From: Bugula neritina
Taxonomy: Eukaryota > Animalia > Bryozoa
Assembly (NCBI GenBank): GCA_964035545.1
Contig: OZ037767.1
Coordinates: 569,680 to 633,679, forward strand
Direction of reading: 5' to 3'
Length of the DNA: 64,000 bases
How positions within the stretch are numbered: position 1 is the first letter of the stretch; every line of letters starts with the position of its first letter. The position numbers and the translations under genes were made by a program. Shown here piece by piece: positions 11,001 to 63,966 of this stretch. The notes under the pieces are model-generated. The model was not told where the DNA came from and made no database searches. It saw nothing but the letters and a program-made list of their open reading frames with translations.

Positions 11001-14000
11001 CCATCTCCTTGTTGTAATACTAGAGACAATCCACTGCTATACAGGGTTGTCTTCTTTTGATCACTTTGATTCAGCTTAGGATTTATCTTCTTCTGTTGAT
11101 TGTGTATTAACTTAGCATCCTATCTAACGTATTGAAGTCCGGACACTCTTGGCAAAGTAATGTGTGACTGAATTGGACAACTTTCACTTTCTGTAGAAAT
11201 TAAAGCGCAGTTGTATTTATATGTGGCTTAGGTTCCTAAACACTTGCTGTGCTGTACAGTATCCTTCCAACTTAGCTCATACTTTTCTCCCAGTTTATTT
11301 CTACAGTCTATGTCTGTTGTGTAGTATGCTCAGGTCTTGTGCTATTTATTCAGTTTTGGAGTTATCTTTCTTGCAAGTTTTCCCTTATGTATCTAGTATT
11401 TTATCATGCTAGAGTTATCTTCTCGTAAAGGTACCCATTAAATCCTGCTGTAGCAGCTCTTCACATCAACACGTTGCAATAATCACCTCCACTCACGTCC
11501 TGGCGTAGAACATGTCTAGACTTAATGCTCTTGCTGTTACTTCTCTGTAGTAGTTTGTGTGTGCTGCGTGTGCTACATACTAGACATGCATCTTGTACGT
11601 ACACGCTAATGTAGCTATGATTCCAGTCGTAGTCTCAGTTATGAAGATTATACGTAAGATACAGAACACTCATTTCCAACAGTACATATGAGCATGTACT
11701 TTGTATTCTCAACAGTTGTTCAACTGCATTGTCTTGATTTAACTGCACAGACTCTCACTTGTATATTACAGACTTTCACTTGTATATTACAGACTCTCAC
11801 TTGTATATTACAGACTCTCACTTGTATATTACAGACTTTCACTTGTATATTACAGACTCTCACTTGTATATTACAGACTCTCACTTGTATATTACAGACT
11901 CTCACTTGTATATTACAGACTTTCACTTGTATATTACAGACTCTCACTTGTATATTACAGACTCTCACTTGTATATTACAGACTTTCACTTGTATATTAC
12001 AGACTTTCACTTGTATATTACAGACTCTCACTTGTATATTACAAACTCTCACTTGTATATTACAGACTTTCACTTGTATATTACAGACTCTCACTTGTAT
12101 ATTACAGACTCTCACTTGTATATTACAGACTTTCACTTGTATATTACAGACTCTCACTTGTATATTACAGACTTTCACTTGTATATTACAGACTCTCACT
12201 TGTATATTACAGACTCTGACTTGTATATTACAGACTCTCACTTGTATATTACAGACTCTCACTTGTATATTACAGACTCTCACTTGTATATTACAGACTC
12301 TCACTTGTATATTACAGACTCTCACTTGTATATTACAGACTTTCACTTGTATATTACAGACTCTCACTTGTATATTACAGACTTTCACTTGTATATTACA
12401 GACTTTCACTTGTATATTACAGACTTTCACTTGTATATTACAGATGAACAAGAAAGAGTTCAAAAGAAAACATTTACTAACTGGATTAATTCTTACTTAA
12501 GAAAGGTAAATATATTGTTGTGTATAGACTATAACCTCTGAAGTTTATATATACACTGTGCAAGTACATACTGTGTAAGTACATACTGTGTAAGTACATA
12601 CTGTGTAAGTACATACAGTGTAAGTACATACTGTGTAAGTACATACTGTGTAAGTTCGCATGTGGTATTTCAGCGCCGACCCCCTGAAAAGATCGCTGAC
12701 TTGTTTGTTGACATCAGAGATGGCGTGAAGTTAATGAAACTGCTGGAGGTGCTGACAGGGCAGCAGCTGGTGAGTATATTATCAGTATATTACTACAATA
12801 CTGTATTACTATAATATTATATTACTACAATACTGTATTACTATATTATTATATTATTTCTACTAAGCATATAATGCAGGCATATGAACTACGTATATAA
12901 TACAGGCATATGAACTACGTATATTATAATACAGGCATATGAACAAGGCGCCAACACCAAACGCATCCACCACATGGCCAACATCAGCACGGCTCTCAAA
13001 GTTCTCGACAACAAACAGATCAAACTGGTCAACATCAACCCTTCTGACATTGTTGACGGCAAACCAAGCATTGTCCTTGGCCTTTGCTGGAATATCATCC
13101 TCTACTTCCAGGTATAATGCTATACAGATATTTATTGCCATGATATAATTCATACAATCAACAGGGTACCTGGAGACCTGCTATATTTAGTTGTCGTCCC
13201 CTCGTGCTCTAAAAAATAATGTTATTTGGCAGATTGAGGAGCAGACAGCTATGTTAGCTAGTCTCTACGCATCAGGGGAGCCTCAGTCTAAGAAATCTCT
13301 CCTAGAGTTTCGTAAGAATGCTAAAAAAGCGCTTCTTGACTGGACTAAGACTGCTTTAACTAAGTAAGTTAGTGATTGGTTGAGATTGACTAAGTAAGTT
13401 AGTGATTGGTTGAGATTGACTAAGTAAGTTAGTGATTGGTTGAGATTGACTAAGTAAGTTAGTGATTGGTTGAGATTGACTAAGTAAGTTAGTGATTGGT
13501 TGAGATTGACTAAGTAAGTTAGTGATTGGTTGAGATTGACTAAGTAAGTTAGTGATTGGCTGAGAGTGACTAAGTAAGTTAGTGATTGGTTGAGATTGAC
13601 TAAGTAAGTTAGTGATTGGCTGAGAGTGACTAAGTAAGTTAGTGATTGGTTGAGATTGACTAAGTAAGTTAGTGATTGGTTGAGATTGACTAAGTAAGTT
13701 AGTGATTGGTTGAGATTGACTAAGTAAGTTAGTGATTGGTTGAGAATAATCAAGATGGATTATTAGCTGAAATAAAAGTTGTTGGCTCATGAGGATGTAG
13801 CTCTTGAAATCCGACATTGCAGATTTCTATATGGTAAATAATTAGTTGAAAAATTTGATGCGCAACTATTGGCTGTTGGAATATGTTAAACAACTTGCTA
13901 TTTGCTGAATAAGTTATAAGAATGTAGCCTGAGGTACTATTACTGTTTATAGAGACATAGGGGTGGAGGTGACAGACTTCTCCACCAGTTGGAGAGACGG

Positions 14001-17000
14001 CATGGCATTCAATGCTATGGTGAACACAGTGCGTAAGGACCTCATAGATATGGACAGTTTGAAGGGCAAAACTAACCGCGAGAGATTGGAGCAGGCGTTT
14101 AGTGTGGCTGACAGGGAGCTGGGCATCCCTATGCTCATGGATGCAGAAGGTGCGTTATAATATATATATGATGAGCTATCTGTTATATATGATGAATTAT
14201 TTGCTATATATGATGAACTATTTGTTATATATGATGAACTTTCTGTTATATATGATGAATTATATGTTATATATGATGAGCTATCTGTTATATATGATGA
14301 ATTATATGTTATATATGATGAATAATCTACTATATATAATGAATTATATGCTATATATGATGAACTTTCTGTTATATATGATGAACTATCTGTTATATAA
14401 TCTCATACAGACGTTGATGTGAACAAACCTGATGAGAAGTCCATCATGACGTACATTGCCCAGTTTCTTAAGGCATACCCAGAGATGGGTTCTGGTAAAC
14501 CCGTAGTGAGTGTATTTTCATTCTAGTAAATTATCATTAGTTGTCTTCCCTTTGCGTATAATAAATATAACTGTAGTTGTCTTCTCTTTATCAATACTGA
14601 TTGACTTCTATTATTAAAGCAAACAACTCCAGTCTTATGTTTTGCCACTCAAATTAGAAACCTGACTTTTCACTAGGATATCAATGCAAACCTGAGTAGA
14701 GATCAGAGGGAGCGGAGAGATCATGATAACCTGGTGCTCTGGTTGGATGAGAATTCAGCACGTCTGAAACACTCGAGACTTTTCACTCCTGACGAGTTTG
14801 ATAACGAGTACGAGGTCAGTGTAATCTACAGCTACAGTGTAATCTACAGCTACAGTGTAATCTACAGCTACAGTGTAGTCTACAGCTACAGTGTAATCTA
14901 CAGCTACAGTGTAGTCTACAGCTACAGTGTAGTCTACAGCTACAGTGTAATCTACAGCTACAGTGTAGTCTACAGCTACAGTGTAATCTACAGCTACAGT
15001 GTAATCTACAGCTACAGTGTAATCTACAGCTACAGTGTAGTCTACAGCTACAGTGTAATCTACAGCTACAGTGTAATCTACAGCTACAGTGTAATCTACA
15101 GCTACAGTGTAATCTACAGCTACAGTGTAATCTGCAGCTACAGTGTAATCTACAGCTACAGTGTAATCTACAGCTACAGTGTAATCTACAGCTACAGTGT
15201 AATCTGCAGCTACAATGTAATCTACAGCTACAGTGTAATCTACAGCTACAGTGTAGTCTACAGCTACTGTGTAATCTACAGCTACGGTGTAATCTACAGC
15301 TACTGTGTAATCTACAGCTACAGTGTAATCTACAGCTACAGTGTAATCTACAGCTACATATATTGGTATGTTTCTGCTGCAGATATTCATTAAAGTGACG
15401 AGAGACTTGGACAGCAATAGCAGAGTTCTCAAACAGCTGGAAGAGAGCTTAGCCAGTGGTGGATCCAGCTACATTACCCCCGAGAAAATCACCATTCTGA
15501 GAGACAAGTGGGAGATATTTACTAGTCAGTATACTATATTCTTATTCTATATTCTTATTACTTACACATGAACTTCATCAGTTCTTTTGCTATTCTACTA
15601 AAAGTGGAGAGGTTGCTATGCAGTTGACTTCCAGCTCAGTGCGAATGCAACTTATTCTTCCATAAAAAACTATTAAAATTGCTTTAAAGTTGCTCAAAGT
15701 TCTCAGCTAGCTAACAGGAGGGGAGAGATTATTAGTTTAACTTGTGTTGAGTAGAACTGAGACTACTGTTGTGAGAGTAACGTAGTAAAACAAGACTGAT
15801 GATTATACTGTGTAGTGTATTGAGTAGAAATACATAATATTTCCTAATGAATAACAAACTAACAGAACTATGGACTCATATATGTACAAAATTGGCCGGA
15901 AGACAGAAAAATACAAACAGGAAGTAGTGATATTTTGTACAGGAAGTCGTGACATTGCATACAGGAAGTTGTGACATTTTGTACAGGAAGTAGCAACATT
16001 GCGTACAGGAAGTAGTCAGGTTACGTACAGGAAGTAGTATGCTATGTGACTCTGTCGGCACCAGAGTGCATACGCCTACGTTCCCTTTCATCTATCATGG
16101 TCCACATCATTCTGAATATACGTTGGTCATTTATATGGTAGAATATCCACATATACTCGTTATTAAATATGGTGTTCTGCTTTATCAAACTGCTCGAACC
16201 AAAATGCACCGTCGACGCCAGTTGCTCAAACGTAGCGTTGATAGTCTTGGCGAGAATGCCAGTGAAGTACACGTCGTCTACCCAGAAGTAAGGTTCATAC
16301 AGAGACTGGTTGTACAGCTTAGGCACTATGTCACCCGTCATTACTACGCCCAACCCGGGACAATATGGCGGGTATTGAGTGCCATTGTATTCCTGCTCTG
16401 TGATCTTCCACTTTCCCGATGTGCGCTGCGGGGTTCTACCATACCACACGTCACACAGGAACGTGTTCTTTAGCACCCGGCCCTGTTTTCTCAGGGTTGT
16501 CAAGTGCCTGAAGAGTAGGTGTATGTCTACCACCATATCATCATCCGTCTTCAGCACCAGCTCTGCTGACTTACAGTAAGTAGACGTCCATTTGCAGCCG
16601 GCTATAGCCTTGTACGTTAAGTTCCTGTAACTGTCCAGAAACGTCTCCTGCACAACGTCCCTATAAACCTCTCCCTCGTACTCTATCTTAGACTGCACCG
16701 TACTGTTGGTAGACATGCCCAGGAAGAATATTAGACTAGCATTATGTACATGGAAGTTATGGGGATTACCCCAGGTCTCCCGTATGAGCATCCGATGCTG
16801 AAAGTGGGAGGGGGCTGTGTGAACCCATATCAGTATGTCAGAGTGTTTCTCCAAGCATGCTCTCTCATTGTTGATGTGGTACTTGAAGGGGTGGGGGTTG
16901 ACGATGTGACTGGCAGGTGTAGCGTAGACTGAGTTTAGTACTAGTAACTGCAGGCATATGTACACAGTCCAGTGGTAGCAGCAGCTTAAACAGAGAGGGA

Positions 17001-20000
17001 AGTCCATCTCATGCACACGGCTACATCTCCATCTTGAGTTGTTGTCTACAGATAAAGAAATGTAATAAGGCAGTGCAGACATGTACAGCTGGAATGTTGC
17101 TCTCTGCTTTACATTACTCGGGTATTGAGATGTAAAATATTAAATATAAATAATTCAGCTGTGAGAAAAGCTAAGCTTCAATGCAATGCAATGCTTTCAT
17201 CAAACCGAAACAATTTCAAATTTGTTTCACAGCTTTGTAAGCTGTATTTATATAAGGATGCGTTGTGTTATTGAGAGCCTATAAGTAACTGCAATAGTAC
17301 TAATACTAAATACTACTCTCTAACTAGTACTAACACTAAATACTACTCTCTAACTAGTACTAACACTAAATACTACTCTCTAACTAGTACTAACACTAAA
17401 TACTGCTCTCTAACTAGTACTAATACTAAATACTACTCTCTAACTGGTACTAATACTAAATACTACTCTCTAACTGGTACTAATACTAAATACTACTCTC
17501 TGACTAGTACTAACACTAAATACTACTCTCTAACTAGTACTAATACTAAATACTGCTCTCTAACTAGTACTAATACTAAATACTGCTCTCTAACTATAGT
17601 ACTAATACTAACAATCATTTTGCATTCACCTACTTCATCAAAATTTTGATCATTTGAACAGAATTGGAATTGAATTGTATCAGAAATTGTACATATTGCT
17701 AGTAAACTGGTAATTCCCAGAGTGAATGTATAACTAACTTTTTCCTGATATACCAAGACTTTAATTTACAGTTACTACATTCAATTGATTCTAAACTTAA
17801 CATCAGAGGGTTATCTTGCTGTCATAGTAATACTGTTTACAGAAATCATTAGTTACCTCCTAGCTACTTCCTTAGATCTAGCTTTATGTAATATCAGTCT
17901 ATATACACACATATAGGCTACAAACCTTCATTGCTTATCTAATCCATTACTGGCATGCTAATTAGTCAGCTAACATCAGTTAATTAATTGCTTGCTGTTA
18001 TTCCAATATTGGTATGACAATGTTGAGTTTAATAATACACTACATCAGTTACAACTTTCCGTCAACAAAAGTGAAAAACCCATCACATGTTTCCCATTCT
18101 ATTGTTGGCTGTAACTTCAAATATTGATCACAAACCCATAGAATTCCTATCAAGTTACTAAGAAGATAAATTGATTTCTCCAGTTATATGATAAATCCTT
18201 ATAATTTAATTATATTATTTTATAGCCATATGCTATGTAAACACCTGAGTATTATGCTCAGTGAATATTAAATAGTAACTTGATAGACATCAGATTTCTC
18301 CACCAAATAGTGTATATTATGAAGATGTGGTAAAATTCTGTCCTGTCTCTCTCTTGCAGTCAGTCGATACGACTATGACTGTTTTATGGGTTAAGCTTAG
18401 ATTTGGTTGCAGCTCTCCACGCAGCTCTGTTGTCAGCTGTCTGCTGCCATGAACTCAAGTTTATTGCTCTCCATTTCATATTCCTCTTAGCAACATCTTT
18501 AAGTCTGAGTCTAGGTCGTCCTGTATTTCTTTTACCCTCTTTCAGCTGAGAGTAGAGCAATTGTCTTGGTAGCCGGCTATGTTCCATCCTGTGCACATGG
18601 CCTAGCCATCTCAAGTTCTTTTCTATAAGGATGTCGGCCATGCTTGGCAAATTGGCACGTCTTAATATTTCTTCATTCGTAACTTTGTCATACCATTTTA
18701 CAGCCATTATGTCTCTCAGTTGCCTCATCATGAAGGCGCTTAGCTTCTTCACCTGTGTCCTGTATATTGTCCATGTTTCTGCTCCATACAGCAGGCTTGA
18801 GAGCACCACCGCTCTGTAGACTTTACACTTTACCCTGATGGATACGTGCCTGTTGTTCCAGAGTCTCTGCTGCAGCTTACCGTAAGCCGCACTTGCTTTG
18901 CCTAATCTGTTCCGTAGCTCTTTATCTATTTTTGCCGTACAGGAAACAGTACTTCCTAGATAAGTAAAGTCTGAGGCAAGTACAACTGGTTCTTGATCTA
19001 TCATGACAACTTCAGGTTCAGGTGGAGGGTGGATGAGTTTAATTGGCTGGTACATGCATTCTGTCTTTTTTATGTTGATTTTTAAGCTAAACTGAGCCGC
19101 TGCTTTTGCAAAGTTGTTCACTAGCACCTGCATATCTGCAGCGCAATGTGCCACCAAAGCACTGTCATCTGCAAACAACATCTCTCTGACTAGGTGTTTG
19201 GTAGTACGGGTCTTAGACTTGAACTGAGCCACATCAAAGAGGTCAGCCCCATGTCGGGTTTGAATATAAATTCCTTCATTTACATTTTGAAATGCCACCT
19301 CAAGCATAGCGGTCAAGTATAATGAAAATAGTGTTGGCGCAAGAACACACCCCTGCTTGACACCATTGGTTACTGCAAACTCATTTGAAGCATCTCTACC
19401 TTGCACTACCTTGGCTTGCATGCCTGCATGAAGAGCTTTTATCAGGTTGATGACCTTCTCAGTTAAGCCAAACTTCTTCAGTACCCTCCAGAGGCCATCT
19501 CTTGATACTGTATCAAAGGCTTTTGTAAAGTCTATAAATACAGCATACAGCTCCATGTTTTGTTCAGCACATTTTTCTTGAATTTGGCGAAAGCTAAATA
19601 TCATATCAATGGTGCTCCTGCTGTTTCGAAAGCCACACTGTGTTTCTGGGAGTATTCCTGGAGTTATATTTACATTGATTTTGTTGAGGATGATACGGGC
19701 CATAATCTTTCCAGCTATAGACAAAAGCGAGATTCCTCTATAATTACCACAGTCCTTCCTACTACCCTTTTTAAAAATGGGCACAATGTTCGCATTTTTC
19801 CAGTTCTGTGGCATCTTCTCATTACTCCATATATAAGCAATCAGATCATATAGTCTCTCTTTAAGCCTGATTCCACCGTACTTCCACACCTCAGCTGGAA
19901 TGCCACATTCTCCAGGAGATTTATTCTCCTTGGTTGCATCTATAGCATCCAGAAGCTCATCAAAACTTGGCATATCGTCTAGGCTTAAATTGGGTGGCAT

Positions 20001-23000
20001 ATTTGTGAGACTATTGAGAGCTTCCTGGTCCACTTCCCCTGGTACATTCAGCAACAGGTCAAAATGTTGGGCGAACCTTTTTAAGGTATCATTCTTTGCT
20101 GTAAGTACTGTTTTACCACTTTGGTCCAGCAATTGGGCGATTCCCCTGTTCTGTGGCCCATAGACTTCTCTAAGGCCATTGTAAAATGCCTTCATGTTGT
20201 TTTTATCAGCTGCCTGTTGGAGTGATTCTGCTTTTTCCTCCCACCATTGAGACTTTTTCTCTCGAGTGTATTTTTGCAACTTGCTGCGTGCTTGCGCTAA
20301 TCGGTCAGTGCTACTTCTTGTTCTTCTCTGTAGTGCTTTTGATTTAGCCTTATTTCGTTCATTAAGTAATGCGTTCAGCTTTGCATCATTGTCATCAAAC
20401 CAATCTTGATGCTTTCTTTCTGCTCTACCTAAGACTTTGGTAGCTGTGTTGAAGGCTGAGATCTTTAACTTTCCCCATCTCTCTTCTAAGGTTACACCAT
20501 CATCATCTCTATAGTCCATTGCCTTATCCATCTGTTTCTGAAACTCCTGTAGCATATCCTGATTTTGTAGTTTCCCCACATTGAGTTTGCATGCGGAGTT
20601 CCCTCTTGTCTTGTTCTTTGCTTTCCTTAATGCAAATGCTAGCTTGGACCTGATCATGATATGGTCAGTTGAGCAATCAGCACCTCTCATTGCCCTAGTA
20701 TCTAGCACATCATTCTGGTCTTTCCGTCTTGTAATCACATAATCGAGGAGGTGCCAATGCTGAGAACGTGGGTGCATCCAGGTGACTTTATGATGCTGCC
20801 TGTGCTTAAATACTGTGTTCGTGATAACAAGCTGGTATTCAGAGCAGAATGCCAGTAGCAGCTCTCCATTTGTGTTACATTTTCCAATTCCTTGATTACC
20901 AATAACGCCTGGCCAATTTTGAGCTTCACACCCTACTCTTGCATTAAAGTCACCGGCTATAATCAGTTTGTCTGTGATGGATATATTTTTTACTGTTTCT
21001 CTCAATTTATTGTAAAACTCCTCTTTCTTTTCTTCCGTATTTGTCATTGTTGGAGCGTAAGCACTCACTATTGTCACATAATGGTTCTTTTTCAGTGGAA
21101 GTCTCATGCTTATAATTCTATCACTTGTTGCTGTTGGTTCTTGTTCTAGATAAGGCATAATTGTATTCCTGATAGCAAACCCCACCCCTGATTCTCTTCT
21201 TTCTTCCTCGCCTTTTCCACTCCAAAAGAATGTGTACCCATTATCAACAAGGCTATCATTCAGGGCAAGCCGAGTTTCACACAAAGCTGCAATATCGATA
21301 TCATATCGGCCCAGCTCTTTTGCAACAAGTGCTGTCTGCCTCTCTGGTCTTTTTGAATTATTCCGGTCTAGTAATGTTCTAACATTCCATTCTGCTAGTC
21401 TCAGAACTTTTCTGAACTTTCCATTGCGTCCTAGCTGACTTTTCACTGGCTGCCGGAGCGGGAGCAGACCAGCGCGAACCTTGTTAACCCGGGCGACGTT
21501 CGTGCCGGTATCAAATACTGTTTCCATTGTCATAGTCCATAAAACTGCATGCGAAGTGGTTAAGTGAACTTGGCTTTCGCGTTACCATGTTCTCTCTCTC
21601 GGCAGGGTGTAAATGGGATCTAGCGGCAAGAACAGGTCAAGACATGCTAGCATTTACAACCTGCTGCAGTGGCTGGCCGTTATACACGTTTGTCTGTACA
21701 CGCCCTTGAGGGCTGCCACAGATACCCACTGGAATGGTCTTTCAGATTTTTAGTAGATGTTATTTTTAGTTCTACATGGATGTCCAGTACACCCTCCCTA
21801 ATGTCAAGACATTAGGGGGTATCGGTTTAGTCGCCGACAGTCCGACCCATGGAACAGGTAGTACCGGTTACATGGTTACCGGTAGCAGATTAAACACCTG
21901 ACCTGACCTGACTTGATAGACATCAGATTTCTCCACCAAATAGTGTATATTATGAAGATGTGGTAATATTCTGTCCTGTAGAGAAATACATAGACTGGAG
22001 CAAGAGGTTAGACAGCTCCTTCCCAAAGCCTTTGGGTAACATTTGCCAGTGGCTATGCGATGCGGAGCGTCTCCTACAGGCCCCTCCTATTCCACTGATG
22101 GCTGAGTTAGAGGACGTGAAAGCTAGTTTCCTGCGTCATCAGGTAGATCTTCCTTATCTCTGTTAGATGAATCACCATTTAATCAGATACCTTTACAAAT
22201 TTTCACTTTATTATGGCTACAAAATGACTTCTTTCATGCATGTTGCAGCATTCAATGTATTTGAAGTTATCTTCTCTTTTAAAATATTTATTTCATAAAT
22301 ACATTTGTCCTTCTGTAGAATTTCTTCCAAGACTTGGAGTCCATGAAGCAAACATTTTCTCGAATAAAGAAAGCCGGGGAATGCAGCGGTAAATTCATAC
22401 CCCAAGACATGGTGTTGAGAACCACAGCTAGGTTAAAGGTCAGTTACTACAGGCTAACATACTTGGATATCTATTAATTGCCTGTTTCACAACATCAACA
22501 CTACTGATGACATTTCCATTTGGCTAGTATAACCATGCAATGTTGTGTACTCTAATCAATATGCCATACAGCTACATACCACAGTAGTCCTACCTGTATA
22601 CTACTTATATACTACCTGTACACTACATGTACACTACCTGTATACTACCTGTACACTACCTGTATACTACCTGTACACTACCTGTACACTACCTGTACAC
22701 TACACCAACAAGTATATTATTGTATCTGTCATCCATTTACCCAGCATAACAGAATAAACTACAGCAAGCTGTTAATACTGTCGAAAAGTTATTTTCACAT
22801 AACAAACTAGTGTTACAGTATTTGGTTGAGTAAACATTAGCGTCACTGACTGCTCGGCAGCAAGCTGACGTACTCTCTGCCAGCAAGTTAGCTTTCTGGT
22901 TCATCTCACATCACCCTGTGCCATGCATGGGTTACAGCTTCAGTTAGGCTGACCTTGTCTGTTGGTTTCTTCTTTTTATTCTCATCCATAAGTTTTGAGT

Positions 23001-50000: not shown

Positions 50001-53000
50001 CTCAGATAGCTAACGAGTTAGACAAGAGATGTATGGGGATTGAGACAGAACTGGTGGTAGGTGTCAGTTACTGATTGGTCAGTATTCTGAATGTGTGTAC
50101 TGCTGCATCAGATGGTTACATGAGTTGACCTGTGATGTTTGGAAATAAGTCACCTTGTGCTCCTTGTTTGACTGCTTGACTAAGATTAGTGTTGATACCA
50201 TTCTCATCCCTGAGTGTTCCTTCAGGAGCTGCTGGGAACTCAGAAAGAGGCTGTGCAGTCAGCAAAGTCATGTGACTCACAGCTGAAGAGTCTCGAGGAC
50301 TGGGTTATGGAATATATGAGTAAAGTGAACGCTGCCTCCTCCGACAGCACTGTGATGAGAGACCTGTGTAATAAATCTAAAGATATTTGCAGAGAAGGTG
50401 AGGGTGCACTGCTGTCTAGAGGGTAGAGTGTAGAGGTATAGAGTGTAGATTGTACAGGTATAGAGTGTAGAGTATAGAGTTTACAGGTATAGAGTGTAGA
50501 GGTATAGAGTGTAGAGGTATAGAGTATATAGTGTAGAGTGTAGAGGTATAGAGTATAGAGGTAAAGAGTGTAAAGTATAGTTTACTTTCAGGTGAACAAA
50601 AGCTGAGAGAATGTGTGAGTCAGGTGGAGGTAACTTCAAATTCCACTTCTCTGGTCGGAAGAGATAATCTTCAGGAGAAGCTCAAGTCCTGCGAGAAATC
50701 TCTAAAAGGTCTATCAGATGCTCTTCTACTTATACAACACAAGTCTTCATTGGCTGATGACATGGAGCAGTTTTGTAACGAGGTGTCTAATTGGCTGCGA
50801 GAGGCAGAACAAATGTTGAAAAAGTGTGAGACTCCGTGGAACAGCGAAAGTGAACTTGAAGCTACACTTTCAGATTTGGAGGTAGGTTGTTGCTATGGTG
50901 TCATGTCTTTTGCTATGGTGTCATGTCTGTTGCTATGGTGCCATGTTTGTTACTATGTAAACATAACCATTATTGTCAAGCATATACTTTATTGATAGAA
51001 TAGATATAAGAATAAATCATAAAGTTTCTGTAATGGAATTTAGATTCTCAAAGACACGGCAATGACATACAGTCAGAAGTGTCAGGCTTCGCTTAACAAG
51101 GTCAAGGACTTGCCGCCGAGCTCTGTCACTGGAGCACTGACTGATCATGTGACCAAACTAGACGTGTTGGCTGGGCAGTGCTCTAAGTTGTCTCATAGTC
51201 TGAGCTCTATGCTGGCTACACTCCGGGAATGGAACGCAACCAATGCTACCCTAACTCAGTCCATCAACACGAGAGACGGGTCACTGAATGCTATCAATAG
51301 CTTGACGTCATCAGACAAGTTTATGATAGAAAATAGAATATCCAAGTGTAAGGTGAGGGATCAGTCTGTCTGTCTGTATGTCTGTCTGTCTGTTAGTCAG
51401 CCAGCTAAATGGTGTATAATATTCTACAGCTAATGTGTAATATTCTACAGCTATTGTATAGTATTCTACAGCTAATGTATAATATTCTACAGCTAATGTA
51501 TAATATTCTACAGCTAATGTATAATATTCTACAGCTAATGTATAATATTCTACAGCTAATGTATAATATTCTACAGCTAATGTATAGTATTCTACAGCTA
51601 ATGTATAATATTCTACAGCTAATGTATAATATTCTACAGCTAATGTATAATATTCTACAGCTAATGTATAATATTCCTAAACACAGGGGCTGGAGAAGAT
51701 GCCGGCTCTTTCTGACCTTCTGTCTAAACTGAAGGTCAACCAGGAGACCCTCACCTCGTCCTGTGGTTCTGCCATGAAACAGAAACTAGAGGAGAGGTAT
51801 GTGGCAGCCGCTGCCGACATCTCTGGACTAGAAACAGCCCTTCAGTTCCTCTCAGGTCAGCTGGAGAAATGTCTGGCTCTGTGGGTGACGTACGCTACTC
51901 AGTCAGAGACTCTCTCCACTAGTCTGGCTGCTCTAGAAGAGAAGGCGAGGGTGGATTTCAAACTCCAGTCCAGCTTTGAAGGGAAAAGTCAGCAAGCCGT
52001 TGCTGCCATGGTATGTCATTAGTCTGGTGGTATCGCATTCACATGTAGCGGCTGGTAGAGTTTAAGCTGAGTCTCTGTGTTTTGTTGTCTTCTGCAGATT
52101 TTTCTCCAACTGTGAGAGTCTTTTTGTTGCAGTGACTGCAACTGTTGTGTGTGATTACAGGAATTTCAAAATAAAGTTGGTGAGATGAACCAGCCAATCA
52201 CAGAGTTCGGCGCACTTTGCTCTGAGCTGAGCAGCATGTGTGGGGAGCCGAGAGTTGGTCTGACTGCCAGCAAGTTACTGTGAGTAGTTACTGTCAGTGT
52301 TACTGTCAGTGTTGAGTAGTTACTGTCAGTGTTACTGCGAGTAGTTACTGTGAGTAGTTACTGTCAGTGTTGAGTAGTTACTGTCAGTGTTACTGTCAGT
52401 GTTACTGTGAGTAGTTACTGTGAGTAGTTACTGTCAGTGTTACTGTCAGTGTTGAGTAGTTACTGTGGGTAGTCACTGTGAGTAGTTACTCTCAGTGTTG
52501 AGAAGTTACTGTCAGTGTTACTGTCAGTGTTGAGTAGTTACTGTGAGTAGTCACTGTGAGTAGTCACTGCGAGTAGTTACTGTCAGTGTTGAGTAGTTAC
52601 TGTGACTAATTACTGTGAGCAGCTACTATTGAACAGCTGATTGCTATTCTATAGTTATACTCATACAGGATGTGCTAAAGTTCTCAAGAAAGTTTAATAT
52701 TCAAAGCTGCCTGGGTTCTTGTAGGAGCCGATATAACTCTCTAAGGGAGACGGCCAGCTCTGTGTTAGACCGTACCCAACTAGCTCAGGAGTATCACGCC
52801 GATTTCAACTCCAGTCTGGAAGCATTTGACACTTGGTATGACGAGATGGTGAAGAGACGGGAGGTGGCTGAGGCTATAGAGACTTTGAAAGACAAGCAGG
52901 CTGCTGTTCAGGTTGGAACACAGGCTATATCTTATACTATATTCGCATACCAGCTTACCATACCAGCCTACTATACTTGTGACCAAATATTTAGTTCTAG

Positions 53001-56000
53001 TATTTCAAAAGTGTAGAAATCTAAGGGAAACGTCTGCTATCTTGAATAGTTTATAAACTGGCTTTACTGTATCAAACTTTCTAATAGCTAATAAAGTGTT
53101 GTTTACTTGCCTCTTATAGGCTTGTGTGGCCGACCAGCCTCAAGGTGACAAGCTAATTACTGAGGTTGCTAAGGCTTCAGAGCAGACGTACGCCACAACG
53201 TCACTCACTGAGCGTAAAGCTGTTCAGCACGAGGTGAGAACGAGGCAGCTGAGACTAGATGAGCTAAACTCGTCTCTCTCCTCGTCTCTGAAACACGTGA
53301 GTATAGAGTGGAGTCTCGTGTGTACATGTAATACTAAGTCTATACTACTATATGCTGTGTCCACATGTAATACTAAGTCTATACTACTATATGATGTGTC
53401 CACATGTAATACTAAGTCTATACTACTATATGATGTGTCCTCATGTAATATTAAATCTATACTACTATATGCTGTGTCCACATGTAATACTAAGTCTATA
53501 CTACTATATATCGTGTGCACATGTAATACTAAATCTATACTACTATATGCTGTGTCCTCATGTAATATTAAATCTATACTACTATATGCTGTGTAGCTGA
53601 GAAACAAGCTGACGGATACTGAAATCTTGATGTCTAAAGTACAGCAGATCAGTAAATCATCAGAGAATAAAACTGAAGAAGTCGGTGAGGAGATGATAAT
53701 GAGATCCACGTGTTCTGAAAAACAAACTCAACTCGCAACATATCAGGTGAGATGGTGAACTTATCATTATATCAGGTGAACTTATCAACTTATCATATCA
53801 TCATATTATCATATCATGTGAGATGTGTGTGTAACTGTGCCATATTCCTTTGTAGAAACTCTATGCTCAGATTGACGAGCTGCAAAGGTCTCTACGGCAG
53901 CATCAGTCTCTACTGAATCCAGAAGGTTCTCAGGAGTGTCTAGACATTGCTCATAACATAACTCAGCTATTGTCTTCTCTTGACACCCAGCTAGCTAAAC
54001 TAGACAGCTGGTGCCAACTCTACAGGTACTAGGGGTTATCTCCTCGTATCATTATACAGTGGCTGGTATCCCTTCATCATACTTGCCTTATCCTTATAAT
54101 ATATGGAATTGTCTCATCTTAGTTCTTCTAATAGAAGTTGTCTCCTTTTCAGCTCCTACGTTTCCGAGCACGAAGAATATGACGTTAAATGTGAAGAGAC
54201 AGGTGCCTCCTTAGACACTCTCGGGGAGAAGATAACTTCAGCATCTGAGAATATTAGTAGTAAACATGCTTTACAGAGGGCTGTCACTAAAACTCAGGTA
54301 TCAGGACATGTAGTAGTGTCATTGTGATAGTCAGTGTGAGTGATTGGCACCTGTTATATGCTGTCAGTGTGAGACACTTGTCATTAGCGTCTGTGAGAGT
54401 AAGACACTTGCCATGCAGTGTCACTGTGAGTAAGACATTTGCCATGCAGTGTCTGTGAAAGATCTGTGCTGTCATTCTAATTTGTCAACGCCTAACAGCC
54501 TGAGTATTTATTTTTACTAACATGCCAACATAGCTGTCATGTGTGTTTCAGTTATGTAAGGCAGAGCTGGTGTCCATTGGCGAGAGTGTGAACTCTCTGA
54601 GACTGCTGGAGGAAAGCGTCTCCCATCACACTGTAAATAAGTCGGTGCTCCATGGCCAGGACATCATAGACCTCTTCACCTCACTTTCTACCTCACTGAA
54701 CAGTAAAGTTGATACTCTAGAGGATGATGTGCAAACATGGAATAGATTTGATGATTTGTCTACTGAGATGATGGAACAACTCCTAACCGTAGAGCACGAT
54801 GTCTCTACTCTAAGCTTGCCTGACAACGCAGAAGGCAAACACCATGTAGCTAATCAGCTTCAGGTATGCTTCCCCATAACCACCTTAATGTTTAGACAAG
54901 GTGACTGCTGACTCTGTAACCATTCAACTGCTGACTCTGTTACCATTCAACTGCTGACTCTGTTACCTCTCAACTGCTGACTCTGTTACCTCTCAACTGC
55001 TGACTCTGTTACCTTTCAACTGCTGACTCTGTAACCTTTCAATTGTTGACTCTGTTACCTCTCAACTGCTGACTCTGTAACCTTTCAACTGCTGACTCTG
55101 TTACCTCTCAACTGCTGACTCTGTTACAGGGCACGCTAGACGAGTTGAGCAACTCTTTTGCACAAAATCTTCTGCAACTGGAAGCAGACGCTAAACATCT
55201 CAACTCAAGCTACCAATCGGGAGAGCCGTTACAGCTGTACAATACTCTAGACAGGAAGTACGGTGATGTAATCAGACACCTGCAGGAAGGTGTCGAGCAT
55301 TGGTCAGAGTGTGCAGCTTGTCATACTGACTACGATGAACAGGTGGCAGTGTGCCAGAAACAGATAGTAGAAGCTGAGCAGTTTGAGGAAGCTGTGTGTA
55401 GCGCCGCATACAAACTGCAGAGTCAACTTCTCCTTGAGGCTAAGGTCAAGGTGAGTCAACTCGTAACTCACTGTCCTCGAGTTTCAACTCGTAACTTACT
55501 GTCCTCGAGTTTCAACTGTCTCCAGCTGGGTTGCTGTTGCTTCATACAGCGATATCTTGTCTGTTTTATTCAGGACTTGAAGAAGCAGATACAGGAGATT
55601 GAAACTAATGTGCACAGTCTCACCACATCTGGTACTTCCGTATCAAAGAGCACGTCACACAATGGCCGCAGTTCTATTAGGTATGGCACACTATTTATAC
55701 CAAGTAACTTATCACTACACTGATGTCATGTATCACTACACTGATGTCACTACACTGATGTCACTACACTGATGTCACTACACTGATATCACTACACTGA
55801 TGTCACTACACTGATATTACTACACTGATACCACTACACTAATATCACTACACTGATATTACTACACTGATATTACTACACTGATACCACTACACTGATA
55901 TCACTACACTGGTATTACTTACCACTACACTGATATTACTACACTGATGTCACTAAACTGATATTACTACACTGATATTACTACACTGATATTACTACAC

Positions 56001-59000
56001 TGATGTCACTACACTGATGTCACTACACTGATGTCACTACACTGATGTCACTACACTGATATCATATTGCAGAGCAACGATAGACTCAATGAGGGCGGCT
56101 ATTCACAAACTCCATTCCTCTGTGGCCAAGTTGGAGAGACAATACCAAACCTACAATTCTCAGGCTAAGGAGCAGCTGCAATCTCTTGAGGGGATCAAAC
56201 ACCAGCTCCCTGAATATGAGCAGATTGTAGCTGAGGCTACTGAGCTACAGCATACTTTAGATGATAAACTGAGTGTGCACAGCAGACTACAGGTAAGTGT
56301 AATCTGTAGAACTGTTATGTTTGGATAGTCAAAGAGGAGGAATATTTTGTTGTTTGTTGCTGAGTCTGGTTTATTTTATCAAACTTGTAGCACATGGAGA
56401 AGCCGCTGACCAACCTTGTGTCACACTTCCATGTGATAGACTCTGAGCACGTCCCTAGTGGAGAACAAGAGAGTTATCAAGAAATTTCAGCGAGAATAGA
56501 GGCATTGTGTCAGTCTAGAAGTGAGATTTACAGTCTCCAAACAGACAGACTGAATGCTCACAGACGATTGGCTACTCAGATGAGACGCCTGGAGGATGAT
56601 ATTATCATAAGTCTGGGAGAGAAGGTGGACAGAGTGGGCAGTGGACTGAATATAGAGAATGCAACTCAGAGATTGGCTGAGTTACAGGTGAGTCACTAGT
56701 TCACTGTGATTCACTATAGTCAACTGTGAGAAACTAGTTCACTGTGAGTTACTAGCTGACTATTTGTCAGTCACTGTTAAAGTGCGAGTCACTCGTTTTA
56801 CCATGAGTCAATAAATGATCAGTCATTCTGTGAAATGCTTGTTTTATTGTTAGTCGACAGTCACTAGTGACTGGAAACACTAGTATCTCTGTACTAGATA
56901 TTTGACATTTGGAGTAGTAAATACAATTCTTGTTTCCAGAGTGTGGATATCTCCTCCTGTGACGAACTGTGGACGGCCATTGAAGAGTCATTCAAGCTCG
57001 TTGAAGAAGGCACGTCACCGAAGGGTTGCGAGAAGTTGATAGCTGATCTCAAAACTTTCAAGCATGACTTTGACAGCTGCCTGATGAAGTTCAACAATTT
57101 GCTGAATTTGCTCGGCGCTGTGGCTGATAAGTACGATATCTTCAAACAAAAGCACAGTCTTGCCAAGGAGTGCCTTAGTTCTCTAGACAAGAGGAGAGTG
57201 GGCCTCAGCAAGTCCGCCCCCGATAGTGTGCAGGAGTGGCAGTCCCACTGTGAACAAGTCAAGGTAAGAACTTTGTGTATGAGTATACAGTAACTGCAGT
57301 GAGGTGTGGTGGCTTTGCTCTTTCACTCCTGGATCAATGTTGTATACTTCAGACGCTGAGTAAGGATATGAAAGACGGAACAGATTTAGTTGAGTCAGTA
57401 TCACATCTGTATTCTGAGCTTACAGAGCTTCTGGAATCTTCTGCCCTCACCACCAGCGTTTCTTCTCTCCAAGATCTTCTCTTCAGGTAAATAATTTATA
57501 TTGAACCTGTTTATATGCATTGCAGACTTTCTGCATTATAATTATGTCATGGCTCCCTTGAACCCAAAATAATGTCTTTGTCAACTGCACATCTGACACC
57601 ATTAGAGCTCTCGTAGAAACTGCTTGTCATTGTTTCAGTATCGGTTCATCTCTCACTCTGTACAGATCATTTGTGTGATGCTGTTTACTACTAAGTCTGT
57701 CTGTATCTGCTTGACCTCTCTCTATTAATATTACTTGTATCAATTTTAGGCTGGAGACAAACACGGATAAACTTTTAGCAGACGGAGAGAGCTCATTGGC
57801 CAAATTCACTGAGTTTAACCAATTGGCTGCTGACTTTGATAACACATATTCTCAACTTAGTCAGACTCTCTCTGGTGTACAGGAAGAGATAGAGGGCGCT
57901 GTCAGGTCGCAGCAGACAGAGAAGGTCAGACGGCAGCTTGAAGTGAGTACAGAATCAGTTTTTGTAGCACCATCTAAATTGAAAATTTCAATAAAGTTGA
58001 ATCTTTCTCTAGTCAATGACTAAATAGTCATGTTAGCAGTTAGTAGTAACACAGAGTGAGTTATTGGTACTATTAGAGTCTGTGTTTCTCTCCAGCCGTG
58101 TGATCAGATGCTGAGAGAGATGACTGAGTCTCACCAGCATCTTTCAGAGATCTGCTCCCAGTCACCACAGAGTGAACACATGACGTCCTCAGTCCTCTCT
58201 CGCACCAGGCAGGTGAAGGAACTCTCCGGCATATACGAGACTTGCAGAGGTCACGTGAGTCACCGAGCCCAAGATCTACAACTTTTACATGACAGGATTG
58301 AGGAGGGTCGCAAAAGACTCTCTGAACTGACTGCCACACTAGACACCACTCAGCTAGCTCTGGACTTGGACACTAAGACACTGCATCTGGATAAGTTGAA
58401 AGTATGTTTGGTTTGTGTACATGATAATTGTGAGTATCTTAACTCTTAAACAGTATTCCAGAACCTGGTATCCTCTACTACTCTAGGAGGACTCCATCTG
58501 TCATGTTTTTCACGCAGAAATAAATTATTATCTTTAGAACTAATTCCATGACTTGGCTCAAAGAGAAATATAACTTGTAGAAGCTGCAGACGGCGTTGTT
58601 AAAGGAGACAAAATCTCTGGAGGTACAGCTGAGTAAACTCTCCCATGTTGATGGAGATGGCCAGATCTCCAAGTTGCAGACGGATTACCATAGCCTCAGT
58701 ACTCGACTAAATGAGGCGGTGAGGGTGTGGGACGGGTATGTCTCTAACCACTCTGATCTAGAAGAAGCTGTCATCTCATTCGGCAGCTGGTTGGACAAAC
58801 AGACGTTCAAGGCGACACCTCCAACTAGCCAGGAGAGCTGTGAGCACACCTTGTCCGCCTTGCAGGTTAGTACCTGGTGTATAGGTTAGTACCAGGTGTA
58901 TAGGTTAGTACCAGGTGTACAGGTTAGTACCAGGTGTATAGGTTAGTACTAGCTGTATAGGTTAGTACCAGGTGTATAGTTTAGTACCAGGTGTATAGGT

Positions 59001-62000
59001 TAGTACCAGGTGTATAGGTTAGTACCAGGTGTATAGGTTAGTACCAGGTTTATAGGTTAGTACCAGGTGTACAGGTTAGTACCAGGTGTATAGTTTAGTA
59101 CCAGGTGTATAGGTTAGTACCAGGTGTATAGGTTAGTACCAGGTGTATAGGTTAGTACCAGGTTTATAGGTTAGTACCAGGTGTATAGGTTAGTACCAGG
59201 TGTATAGGTTAGTACCAGGTGTATAGGTTAGTACCAGGTGTACAGGTTAGTACCAGGTGTATAGTTGGGCACATTATGAGTGAGTAAGGTGAAGTGTATT
59301 CTACAGGTTCAGGTTGACCTGTTCAAGAAGCAGGCGTCTGATCAGCTGGATGAGTTGACAGTAAAGTCGGTGCTGGTGAAGGGGGAGACAAGTCCTGAGG
59401 GAATACATAACATCGATGAGGTGATACACAGGTGCAGAACTCACCTTTCACAAACTCAGAACGATGCAGATCTCAGTCTAACCTCTCTCACTCAGCTATT
59501 GGATGATTTTGTTGATTATAACGGAGAATATGAGCGTCAGGTAAGGTGGTGGCTTGCTTCTTCTGTACTCAATATCCATCTCAATAGTTTGCTAATTTGC
59601 GTTTGAAAAGTTTGAAAATCGATTTTCGCCATGTTCTTATGAGATAGTAACATAACTTGAAAGTGGAAGTGATATGTAGTGATGTGAAATTGTCTAGTGA
59701 CTTTGGTGTAGGATGAGTGCTGTTTCACTTTGAAAGTGTTACAAGGTTTTTGATTGGATAATTGTTTGCAGACTGCGTGGGTGCAGACGATGAATGAGTC
59801 ATCCACAGAGCTGATGAGTTACAATCCACTGAAGTCTCTCTCTGAGCAGCTGGAGCAGTTCAAACAGGCCGAGGTAAGCCGGTGGTGCTTGGTGGCAGAT
59901 TTGACGTTGAGTTAATATGGGGAGTTGTAGTCACTCTGATTGATATGGGGAGTTATAGTCACTCTGATTGATATGTAGAGTTATAGTCACTCTGATTGAT
60001 GTGTAGAGTTATAGTCACTCTGATTGATATGTAGAGTTATGGTCACTCTGATTGATATGGGGAGTTATAGTCACTCCAGCTAGCTATCAAAGTGAGCCAT
60101 GGTTTTATATATGTAATACTCCGTAAAATGTTGTTTTATAATGGAAATGTGATTGAAGCAAATCATAACATGTAACTCCTCTTGTAGTATTTGCTGGATG
60201 AGATACAGGAACACGAGACAGACATCAGAGCTGTGAAGGAACAGGCTCAGTCACTGCTGGGCAGATGTCCCTCTGCACACAGACTGACTAGTGATATTGT
60301 TAGACTTACTGAAAAATACGACATGCTGGCTTATACCTCACAGGTATTGGCAGACGTATAAATTGTAAAAGAAGCTACAAACTGCGATTGTTTAACATAA
60401 TATTGATAAATAACAACATGAACCAGACATGTACTAATCATACTAAGCAGTTACTGAGCTTTGACTCTGCACACATTCCAGGCGTCTCTGGGTAAACTCG
60501 AGCATTCCGTAGACCACCAGAAGAGACTTGAGACGTGCCAACGCTCTCTCCAAGATACTGTAGACTTTGGTGGCTCCACCCTTGCAGAGATTGACCTAGA
60601 AACTGAGGACTTGCAGCTTATTGGTCAGAATATTGACACACTTAAGGTAGTAGAATTAGTTATTATAATACTTCATATTCCACTTTGCTATGTTTTCTAA
60701 TTTACCCAAAATGTTTGTTTTGGTTTGTTAATGTTTGGCAACTTTCATAAGATGTTAGACAGAAAGCTTTTATACTGGCATGTATTTGGCTTTATCTGTA
60801 TTCACTCATAAGACCACATACCTAGTCATAGTCCACACAGAATTCTCTTTGAATTCTCACCTTATTGCTTTATCATGCCGAACCAATTTCGTACTCTTCC
60901 ACCATTTTCTAGCGACTGAAGCAAGAGCTGTCCGCTGAAGGTCAGCAGAGGGTCACGGATCTGCAATCAGAAATGGATGCCAATGTAAGAGGTGCAGACA
61001 ACTCTCCAGCTGAGCTGATAATAGACTATGAGCAGCTGACCAGCAAACTGAACCGGCACATTGGACAGCTTGAGTCTAAGTTAGCCACACATCAAGGTTA
61101 GTCCTGAGTCTAAGTTAGCCACTCATCAAGGTTAGTTCTTCATTCTCAGTGCTTCTTTTACAAGACTTTTGTATGGGATGTTTAGTGTTTCTAGTAGTAA
61201 AAGTGTTTACTTGAGACTGCAACCCTGTCTAGTCATACTTTGTGATGTCACAGAGTCATCAGTAGTTCTGGCTGAGGCTAAAGGTTACTTGGACTCCGTG
61301 GAAACGCGTCTATCAGAGCTGCAGTTTGCCGATGACGTCACAAGTAAAAGGAAGACAACTTCCTGTTTGCAAGATCTCGATTCAGTGTGTGAGCTGGCGC
61401 TGGACCTCATCCACTCCTTACAGCAGAAGATTTCCTCTCTCTCTCCCAGCATAGCTCTGGCAGTTCAGAACCTAGCTACTCGGCATGCTGGCCTGTCTTC
61501 TGATGTACAGGTGAGTAAACAGGTGTACAGGTGATTCAACAGGTGTACAGGTGAGTGTACAGGTGGGTCAACAGATGAGTCATCAATTGAGTCAGAGCTC
61601 AGCTAGCAGCTGTAAAAGTTATATGTCTCATCTTCTCACAGGATGCCATGAAGATGAGGAGTCTCTATCTAGAGAGACACGAGAGAATGGACAGAGAGTT
61701 GTCTGCCCTCTCCGCCAGTTTGCAGGAAGTAAATGAAACTCTGGACAGGATACAGCAAGATAAAGTTGGTGAATCTACAGTTCACAGGAACATCAGGTAA
61801 TCATCGATATTCTTGTATGTTCACCTGACTCTTGTATGTTCACCTGACTCTTGTATGTTCACCTGACTCTTGTATGTTCACCTGACTCTTGCTATGATGT
61901 GTACAGTTGACTGTTACCTGTTTCGCATTCACCTAGAAATAATTTGTTTTACTAACTTGACCCTTTGTACAATGTTGGAGTTATTTTCTCTTTGGTTCTC

Positions 62001-63966: not shown

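Follow-up and report, generated by a model that had tools for sequence, protein, structure and literature searches.

Introduction

Tandem repeats that take in a splice site are known from human and amphioxus genes, and human CBS, with a 31-bp variable number tandem repeat (VNTR) at the boundary of exon 13, is one such case. Repeats that span an exon–intron boundary were named 'mirages' at the amphioxus Adh3 locus (as recounted in PMC3087553). The amphioxus globin genes BflGb6 and BflGb9 carry mirages at 5′ and 3′ boundaries, with length differences between haplotypes, concerted evolution and undisturbed splicing, and mirages were suggested to be general in cephalochordates (PMC3087553). In human F7, the first monomer of a 37-bp VNTR in intervening sequence 7 (IVS7) spans the exon 7 boundary, giving 5–9 identical donor sites (PMC1557585). 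Fifty constructs of this gene used the most upstream donor alone, even against stronger downstream sites (PMC1557585). Here we describe splice-site-copying arrays in a giant gene of the bryozoan Bugula neritina, within a window of 64,000 nucleotides (nt) from GenBank assembly GCA_964035545.1 (contig OZ037767.1, positions 569,680 to 633,679). Positions below are those of the window.

The arrays had been noticed in a first-pass annotation made from the letters of the window, which treated the phenomenon as not known to have been described as a genome-wide system. The amphioxus work contradicts that view. The analysis reported here indicates that the arrays probably arose by chance, as a side effect of rampant local duplication within short introns, and were not aimed at splice sites: donor sites are copied as often as random placement predicts, and acceptor sites are copied less often.

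Results and Discussion

Tandem arrays in the introns of a giant gene

The host gene lies on the + strand at 12444–63951, with 81 modelled exons in the window, and runs about 43 kb beyond the window end. It was modelled with a frame-aware exon-chain finder that used codon log-odds from long repeat-free open reading frames (ORFs), an intron penalty and splice matrices retrained on its own output. Four exons were patched by hand, and 90 kb of downstream sequence was added for the extension of the model. The joined window exons, starting from 12444, form a stop-free frame of 16,198 nt by a stop check within the script; with the extension, the model has 135 exons, is stop-free over 28,617 nt and ends near 106,777 in window-based numbering.

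Tandem Repeats Finder (TRF) returned 138 rows for the window. Once redundancy is removed, 89 arrays remain, and 26% of the window lies in them. Arrays are present in 82 of the 134 introns of the gene and make up 36% of its intron DNA, or 47% in introns of up to 1.5 kb. Eighteen random 10-kb samples of the genome had a mean of 7% of their length in arrays (range 0–32%), and the gene is therefore richer in arrays than the genome at large. A search of these samples for the motif GGTRAGT found it in none of 45 usable arrays, a number too small to give power. Some 80% of the arrays in the gene sit inside introns and have unrelated units, and about one-sixth of the repeats carry a copy of the gene's own splice site. 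Exons hold one array only, at 42176–42230, a weak one (30 nt × 1.9, 78% matches) at a place where the coding sequence has many GCAGC and CAG motifs. Set against the 82 introns with arrays, this agrees with the suggestion of the first-pass annotation that expansions are ubiquitous and survive in introns.

The same annotation had described the repeats as private to their introns and lacking a common consensus, and this is borne out. Only 41 of 7,260 array pairs have at least three 10-mers in common, and these pairs represent paralogous genes or AT-rich sequence. The 33-nt unit of the array starting at 46061 has 29 matches in the 216-Mb genome (nine chromosome-scale contigs), all within that array. 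Two tandem paralogous genes lie 3′ of the giant gene, at about 110,249–113,606 and 117,324–119,821 of the extension (contig about 679,900–689,500), and these share orthologous intron arrays, with units at 110,767 and 117,842 and at 112,364 and 119,520. At least some arrays are therefore older than the gene duplication, or were copied along with the gene.

All 16 splice-signal-copying arrays listed in the first-pass annotation proved to be real, near the copy numbers and in the relation to the junction that it gave, and two further donor arrays (53740 and 56688) were found. The arrays in the window are as follows, with a slash marking the exon–intron boundary.

13359–13745, + strand, donor array: 30 nt × 12.9; 5 nt of exon and GTAAGT copied; 12 of 12 internal copies equal the first site
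33205–33724, + strand, donor array: 53 nt × 9.8; 21 nt of exon and GTACTG copied
36026–36215, + strand, donor array: 30 nt × 6.4; starts at the G of GT
39541–39650, + strand, donor array: 30 nt × 3.7; CAG/GTGAGT; 8 nt of exon copied
40098–40731, + strand, donor array: 55 nt × 11.5; 10 nt of exon and GTGAGT copied; GT intact in 9 of 11 internal copies
46061–47021, + strand, donor array: 33 nt × 29.1; 17 nt of exon and GTACTG copied
47678–48183, + strand, donor array: 13 nt × 38.9; starts at the G of GT
52273–52627, + strand, complex donor array: 13-nt motif with a 70-nt higher-order period
53740–53796, + strand, donor two-copy duplication: 29 nt × 2; absent from the earlier list
56688–56755, + strand, donor array: 18 nt × 3.7; starts at the G of GT; absent from the earlier list
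58864–59264, + strand, donor array: 19 nt × 21.1; AG/GTTAGT; GT intact in 18 of 20 internal copies
61071–61136, + strand, donor two-copy duplication: 34 nt × 1.9; 26 nt of exon copied, the maximum and the figure given earlier
61504–61594, + strand, donor array: 20 nt × 3.1; CAG/GTGAGT
11747–12444, + strand, acceptor array: 21 nt × 33.2; units end pyrimidine-rich followed by ACAG; the first CH-domain exon has the last copy as its 3′ splice site
12862–12944, + strand, acceptor array: 26 nt × 3.1; AG and 10 nt of exon copied
34029–34095, + strand, acceptor two-copy duplication: 3′ splice site and about 7–12 nt of exon; TRF score below 50, confirmed by a TRF-free 10-mer test
41869–41954, + strand, acceptor array: 29 nt × 3.0; AG and 15 nt of exon copied
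45072–45150, + strand, acceptor two-copy duplication: 3′ splice site and exon start; TRF score below 50, confirmed by a TRF-free 10-mer test

The exon sequence included in the unit measures 5–26 nt in ten donor arrays and 10–15 nt in acceptor arrays; four donor arrays start at the G of GT and include none. Among the larger donor arrays, GT is intact in 12/12, 9/9, 28/28, 32/38, 18/20 and 23/25 internal copies, and the 9-mer of the first site recurs unchanged in 12/12 internal copies at 13359, 7/9 at 33205, 5/11 at 40098 and 19/25 at 87145 in the extension. The unit of the acceptor array 11747 is in frame and stop-free, and an ORF at 11738–12538 is open across the array. Array 52273 has two candidate donors 6 nt apart, 52274 (CAA/GTTACT) and 52280 (ACT/GTGAGT), both in frame with the acceptor at 52724; the site matrix favours the first and the consensus the second. 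An alternative acceptor for this intron, at 52668, was rejected, as it breaks the frame.

Other arrays abut a junction without copying it, as had been described for all of them but 43344.

14817–15358, + strand, abutting array: 18 nt × 30; begins 2 nt past GT and ends 24 nt before AG; collapsed intron 44 nt
28388 (+3), 63496 (+3) and 43344, + strand, further abutting arrays on the donor side
25394 (8 nt before AG), 53324 (2 nt) and 54904 (2 nt), + strand, further abutting arrays on the acceptor side

When its arrays are collapsed to one unit, the median array-bearing intron is 116 nt long, and the units measure 13–55 nt. Array-free introns have a median of 172 nt and a minimum of 81 nt. Below this minimum fall 27 of the 82 collapsed array-bearing introns, many of them at 34–70 nt. 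The arrays therefore seem to have taken the place of unique intron sequence as far as the core signals, rather than being a simple insertion into it. Unique flanks may be lost after an array has come to supply the intron length.

Placement of the arrays relative to splice junctions

The frequency of junction-copying arrays was compared with a null in which the arrays of each intron were collapsed to one unit, a unit of that length was placed uniformly so as to overlap the intron, and inclusion of the GT or the AG was counted. A more sensitive count combined a TRF score of 30 with a 10-mer decoy check. TRF edges are off by a few bases, and its misses include 69693 (donor) and 66522 (acceptor).

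Window: donor 13 against 11.2 expected (P = 0.32); acceptor 2 against 11.2 (P = 0.0003)
Downstream extension alone: donor 5 against 6.6 expected; acceptor 1 against 6.6 (P = 0.004)
Whole gene: donor 18 against 17.9 expected (P = 0.52); acceptor 3 against 17.8 (P < 1e-4)
Whole gene, sensitive count: donor 19 against 19.3 expected; acceptor 6 against 19.3 (P = 1e-4)

Donor-copying arrays occur at the expected frequency, and acceptor-copying arrays are 2–6 times rarer than expected (3–6 seen, or 9–10 by the loosest count, against about 18). In the sensitive count the donor-over-acceptor asymmetry has a binomial P of 0.015, and a TRF-free count found decoy donors in 15 introns (138 in all) and decoy acceptors in 8 (13 in all). 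Junction-copying arrays are, in total, fewer than the null expects. Targeting of junctions by the duplication process is not supported by these counts. The first-pass annotation had offered a process directed at exon–intron borders as one explanation, and had associated a lack of enrichment with short ancestral introns; a lack of donor enrichment is what the placement test found in this gene.

Duplication or expansion aimed at exon–intron borders might have U1, the spliceosome or R-loops at 5′ splice sites as its trigger, and the junction arrays would then be its mechanistic signature. If ancestral introns were at least 155 nt long, donors would stand at 1.5 times expectation (P = 0.03), and array starts at +1 to +6 past the GT are in excess, 10 against 3.9 expected (P = 0.005). 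This pile-up is mirrored, however, at the other end of the intron, where 39 arrays end 1–30 nt before the AG against 19.7 expected, a pattern that fits expansion up to constrained signals. The direct null is matched exactly by the donors, acceptor junctions are depleted, and the great majority of arrays are intron-internal with unrelated units. We therefore regard border targeting as improbable.

Alleles and relatives

A protein search with the exon at 47390–47677 found a 99%-identical ORF on L001 (5.2 kb) and L002, two Joint Genome Institute (JGI) metagenome contigs that represent another individual. Their introns are 92–95% identical to those of the window and carry arrays at matching places with other copy numbers.

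Copy number, window against L001: 13-mer 38.9 against 20.7; 15-mer 11.2 against 8.3; 21-mer 12.6 against 23.1

The first donor of array 47678, CAG/GTGAGT, is constant across the three alleles, and the internal units differ: among the 13-mers, GTGAGT predominates in the window and ATGAGT in the two other alleles. A relative at about 60% amino-acid identity (contigs L012–L015) covers orthologues of six exons, and its introns, 270–640 nt long, are array-free. The six consecutive exons match the relative's contigs essentially end to end in tblastn, which supports the exon boundaries of the model. The relative's exon ends coincide with the first-donor reading, arrays 46061 and 47678 included, and its protein has no matching insert. 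In a protein from another relative (P0002), the exon ends in ...KQSQ and an intron starting with GT follows at the equivalent place. The comparison of orthologous introns that the first-pass annotation had proposed, across haplotypes and related species, thus yields variable copy numbers next to a constant first donor, and a distant relative with the same exon ends and no arrays.

Relatives also have an extra intron within the orthologue of exon 47390–47677 (L012:2660–2916, L013:1032–1288 and L014:734–1044), and the exon at 34690–35283 (198 amino acids) matches relatives only as two separate pieces. The extra introns suggest either intron loss in the Bugula neritina lineage or gain in the relatives.

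Choice of splice site and reading frame

The copy adjacent to the exon, that is the first donor or the last acceptor, appears to be the authentic site. The best evidence for this is comparative, from the exon ends shared with relatives and the first copy that is constant across three alleles, and the stop-free frame of 135 exons supports it indirectly. Searches for transcript-derived proteins covering the exons gave only genomic ORFs running into introns and short fragments from relatives. The first-pass annotation was right that the spliceosome would face dozens of identical sites, a situation for which human F7 IVS7 provides both a precedent and a rule (PMC1557585).

If internal donor copies were used, the result would be an early stop or a frameshift in 17 of the 18 donor arrays: on reading from the exon into the array, a stop is met within 1–31 codons in 17 of 18. 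The sole donor array that is in frame and open throughout is 46061. Coding use of the arrays in general was ruled out on this ground, with 1 of 18 donor arrays in frame and open, and the hidden variable-length splicing raised in the first-pass annotation finds no general support. Periods divisible by 3 are as frequent among donor arrays (5/18) as among other arrays (25/90), at 28% in both. Across internal donor copies, GT positions vary in 5.0% of cases, the other core positions in 2.4% and the rest of the unit in 6.8%. Selection against decoy donors was ruled out, GT positions being no more variable than others (5.0% against 6.8%).

The arrays might nevertheless be functional, as ladders for stepwise (recursive) splicing, as platforms for U1 binding, or as alternative sites for isoforms of variable length, with 46061 lying in the rod and 11747 just ahead of the actin-binding CH domain. 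In favour of such roles, most decoy GTs are intact, and the rest of the unit is more variable than the core donor positions. An AG stands directly before the GT at each copy in 12 of 18 donor arrays, which is the layout of recursive sites, and neither 46061 (33 nt) nor 11747 (21 nt) breaks the frame or contains a stop. The low variation is, however, also expected without selection in young, homogenised arrays, and the reading frame evidence counts against function, both through the stops and frameshifts of nearly all donor arrays and through the absence of an excess of periods divisible by 3. So do the roughly two-fold differences in copy number between individuals, the lack of a GT in most 13-mer decoys of the other allele, and the relative, whose orthologous introns are array-free and whose protein has no matching insert. 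A functional role for the arrays is accordingly judged unlikely. The specific proposal that arrays 46061 (33 nt × 29) and 11747 (21 nt × 33) serve as alternative sites, giving isoforms that differ by multiples of 11 and 7 residues, or that AG/GT ladders are removed stepwise, would be a little more doubtful still.

That the arrays are assembly or sequencing artefacts, to which long near-identical arrays are prone in principle and which the first-pass annotation had named as a possible refutation, can be set aside almost completely, as no actual support for it was found, the arrays recur at corresponding positions, with variants of their own, on independent metagenome contigs built from short reads of two samples, and the array edges fit the stop-free 135-exon frame.

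Origin of the arrays

The explanation that we prefer, chance duplication in short introns, would work as follows. Local tandem duplication and expansion, generally frequent and presumably due to replication slippage or unequal exchange, would be able to strike anywhere. Copies within coding exons would be purged by selection, and intronic copies would persist and grow until the intron is filled up to its core splice signals. Because the unique part of the collapsed introns is short and the units are 13–55 nt long, a sizeable share of the seeding duplications would straddle a junction, and copy its splice site, by chance.

On the donor side, the arrays would be effectively neutral, with the spliceosome taking the most upstream of the identical 5′ sites, which is the authentic copy. 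The agreement of donors with the null expectation and the F7 precedent both point in this direction. On the acceptor side, there would be selection against full-strength decoy 3′ sites upstream of the authentic one, and the acceptor arrays mostly have 2–4 copies. In early globin constructs with duplicated acceptors, the upstream copy was reportedly used. The donor and the acceptor side would both be accounted for by a rule under which, among identical sites of full strength, the one furthest upstream is taken.

Several observations weigh against this account. The null is sensitive to how long ancestral introns are taken to have been: a floor set at 120 or 155 nt lowers the expectations to 14.1 or 12.3, turns the 19 donors into a weak excess of 1.3–1.5 times (P = 0.10 and 0.03) and weakens the acceptor deficit (P = 0.008 and 0.03). 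A count that takes in all two-copy cases as well as the upstream array 11747 puts donors to acceptors at about 20 to 9–10, or roughly P = 0.06. The arrays are not simply inserted into unchanged introns, given how many collapsed introns (27/82) are below the array-free minimum of 81 nt. Simple AG-scanning, in which the first AG past the branch point is taken, was rejected as the cause of the acceptor deficit, since 36% of the arrays lying 1–30 nt from the AG are AG-free against 35% of distant ones. The rule of first donor and last acceptor rests on comparative and reading-frame arguments, and in array 46061 the exon-adjacent donor (ACG/GT) scores below 25 of the 28 internal copies (AAG/GT), so that the F7 rule may fail there.

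The host gene and its surroundings

Two CH domains were found with Pfam at 12914–13114 and 13933–14157 (E = 2e-9 and 3e-13), forming an N-terminal pair. Spectrin repeats (PF00435, E = 1.7e-12) are present in an exon of 654 amino acids downstream of the window, in which the nesprin-1 spectrin model scores under its cut-off (25.3 against 35 bits). Most window exons had no match in the Pfam scan. Inspection by eye of the 3.5 kb past the last modelled exon, where no profile search was made, showed no KASH-like ORF, and exon-chain modelling of the window found no coding exon of this gene 5′ of 12444. 'Nesprin-like' seems a fair label for a giant gene with a CH–CH pair and spectrin repeats, and its 3′ end may alternatively be of the spectraplakin type. 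The exon chain has a gap of 12.9 kb at 71,668–84,537 of the extension, which is a single very long intron or holds exons missed by the finder. The upstream neighbour is a gene with a KA1 domain (Pfam) at its end, at 2638–2877.

Intron 8, 6.5 kb long, contains two features on the − strand.

16042–17082, − strand: nested single-exon galactosyltransferase gene (Pfam Galactosyl_T, E = 1e-39), outside the repeat phenomenon
18384–21533, − strand: intact ORF of 1,049 amino acids of a long interspersed nuclear element (LINE), with endonuclease and reverse transcriptase

The LINE is flanked by a 69-bp direct repeat at 18278–18346 and 21911–21979, 98.6% identical, and the second copy stops 2 nt before the AG of the exon starting at 21982. 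The insertion apparently took place just 5′ of a 3′ splice site. Its target duplication would be unusually long, taking in the pyrimidine tract and not the AG.

Comparison with known systems

Choice among equal splice sites has so far been addressed in mammals mainly at F7. Hundreds of introns with natural ladders of identical sites would amount to a ready-made experiment on how the spliceosome chooses, and the asymmetry predicts neutrality for decoy donors that lie downstream and a cost for decoy acceptors that lie upstream. For the annotation of bryozoan genomes the arrays are a hazard, because they offer many equally good sites and because in-frame arrays may be taken for coding sequence.

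The F7 VNTR resembles the Bugula neritina arrays in that an authentic donor is followed by identical pseudo-sites. It differs in being one locus with 5–9 copies that was tested experimentally, whereas Bugula neritina has up to 39 copies in many introns, with site choice read from sequence. At array 46061, moreover, most decoys are stronger than the first copy, and the F7 constructs covered such a situation only up to a limit.

The intron-gain model of Rogers, as recounted in PMC3087553, has an AGGT-containing exon segment duplicated, and like the present arrays it involves a tandem duplication with a splice signal that makes extra usable sites. The account in PMC3087553 includes the proposal that mirage arrays are raw material for new introns. 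Unlike in that model, no new intron position is shown in Bugula neritina, and it is the relative that has one more intron in the orthologue of exon 47390–47677.

With ordinary intronic VNTRs and minisatellites, the arrays have in common locus-private units of 10–60 nt, high identity between copies and copy-number polymorphism. They are set apart by their abundance, at 36–47% of the intron DNA of this gene against about 7% in random samples, and by the frequent replacement of nearly the whole intron.

The closest likeness is to the mirages of amphioxus, with which the arrays share a unit spanning the boundary on the 5′ or 3′ side, GT or AG kept in many units, differences in copy number between haplotypes, and concerted evolution within the array from which the boundary copy is set apart. 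Units are mostly 13–55 nt in Bugula neritina, as against 150–160 nt in the amphioxus globins and 10–72 nt at Adh3, as far as the Adh3 mirages are recounted in PMC3087553. The two systems belong to different phyla, and the density is far higher in Bugula neritina, with 19 donor-type arrays in one gene. A comparison of array frequency with a placement null, made for Bugula neritina, brought out a donor-over-acceptor bias that the amphioxus account does not report (PMC3087553). The arrays of Bugula neritina are thus of a known kind, mirage minisatellites, in a second phylum and at very high density; new are the donor-over-acceptor asymmetry, the lack of decoy decay and of frame bias, and the comparisons between alleles and between species.

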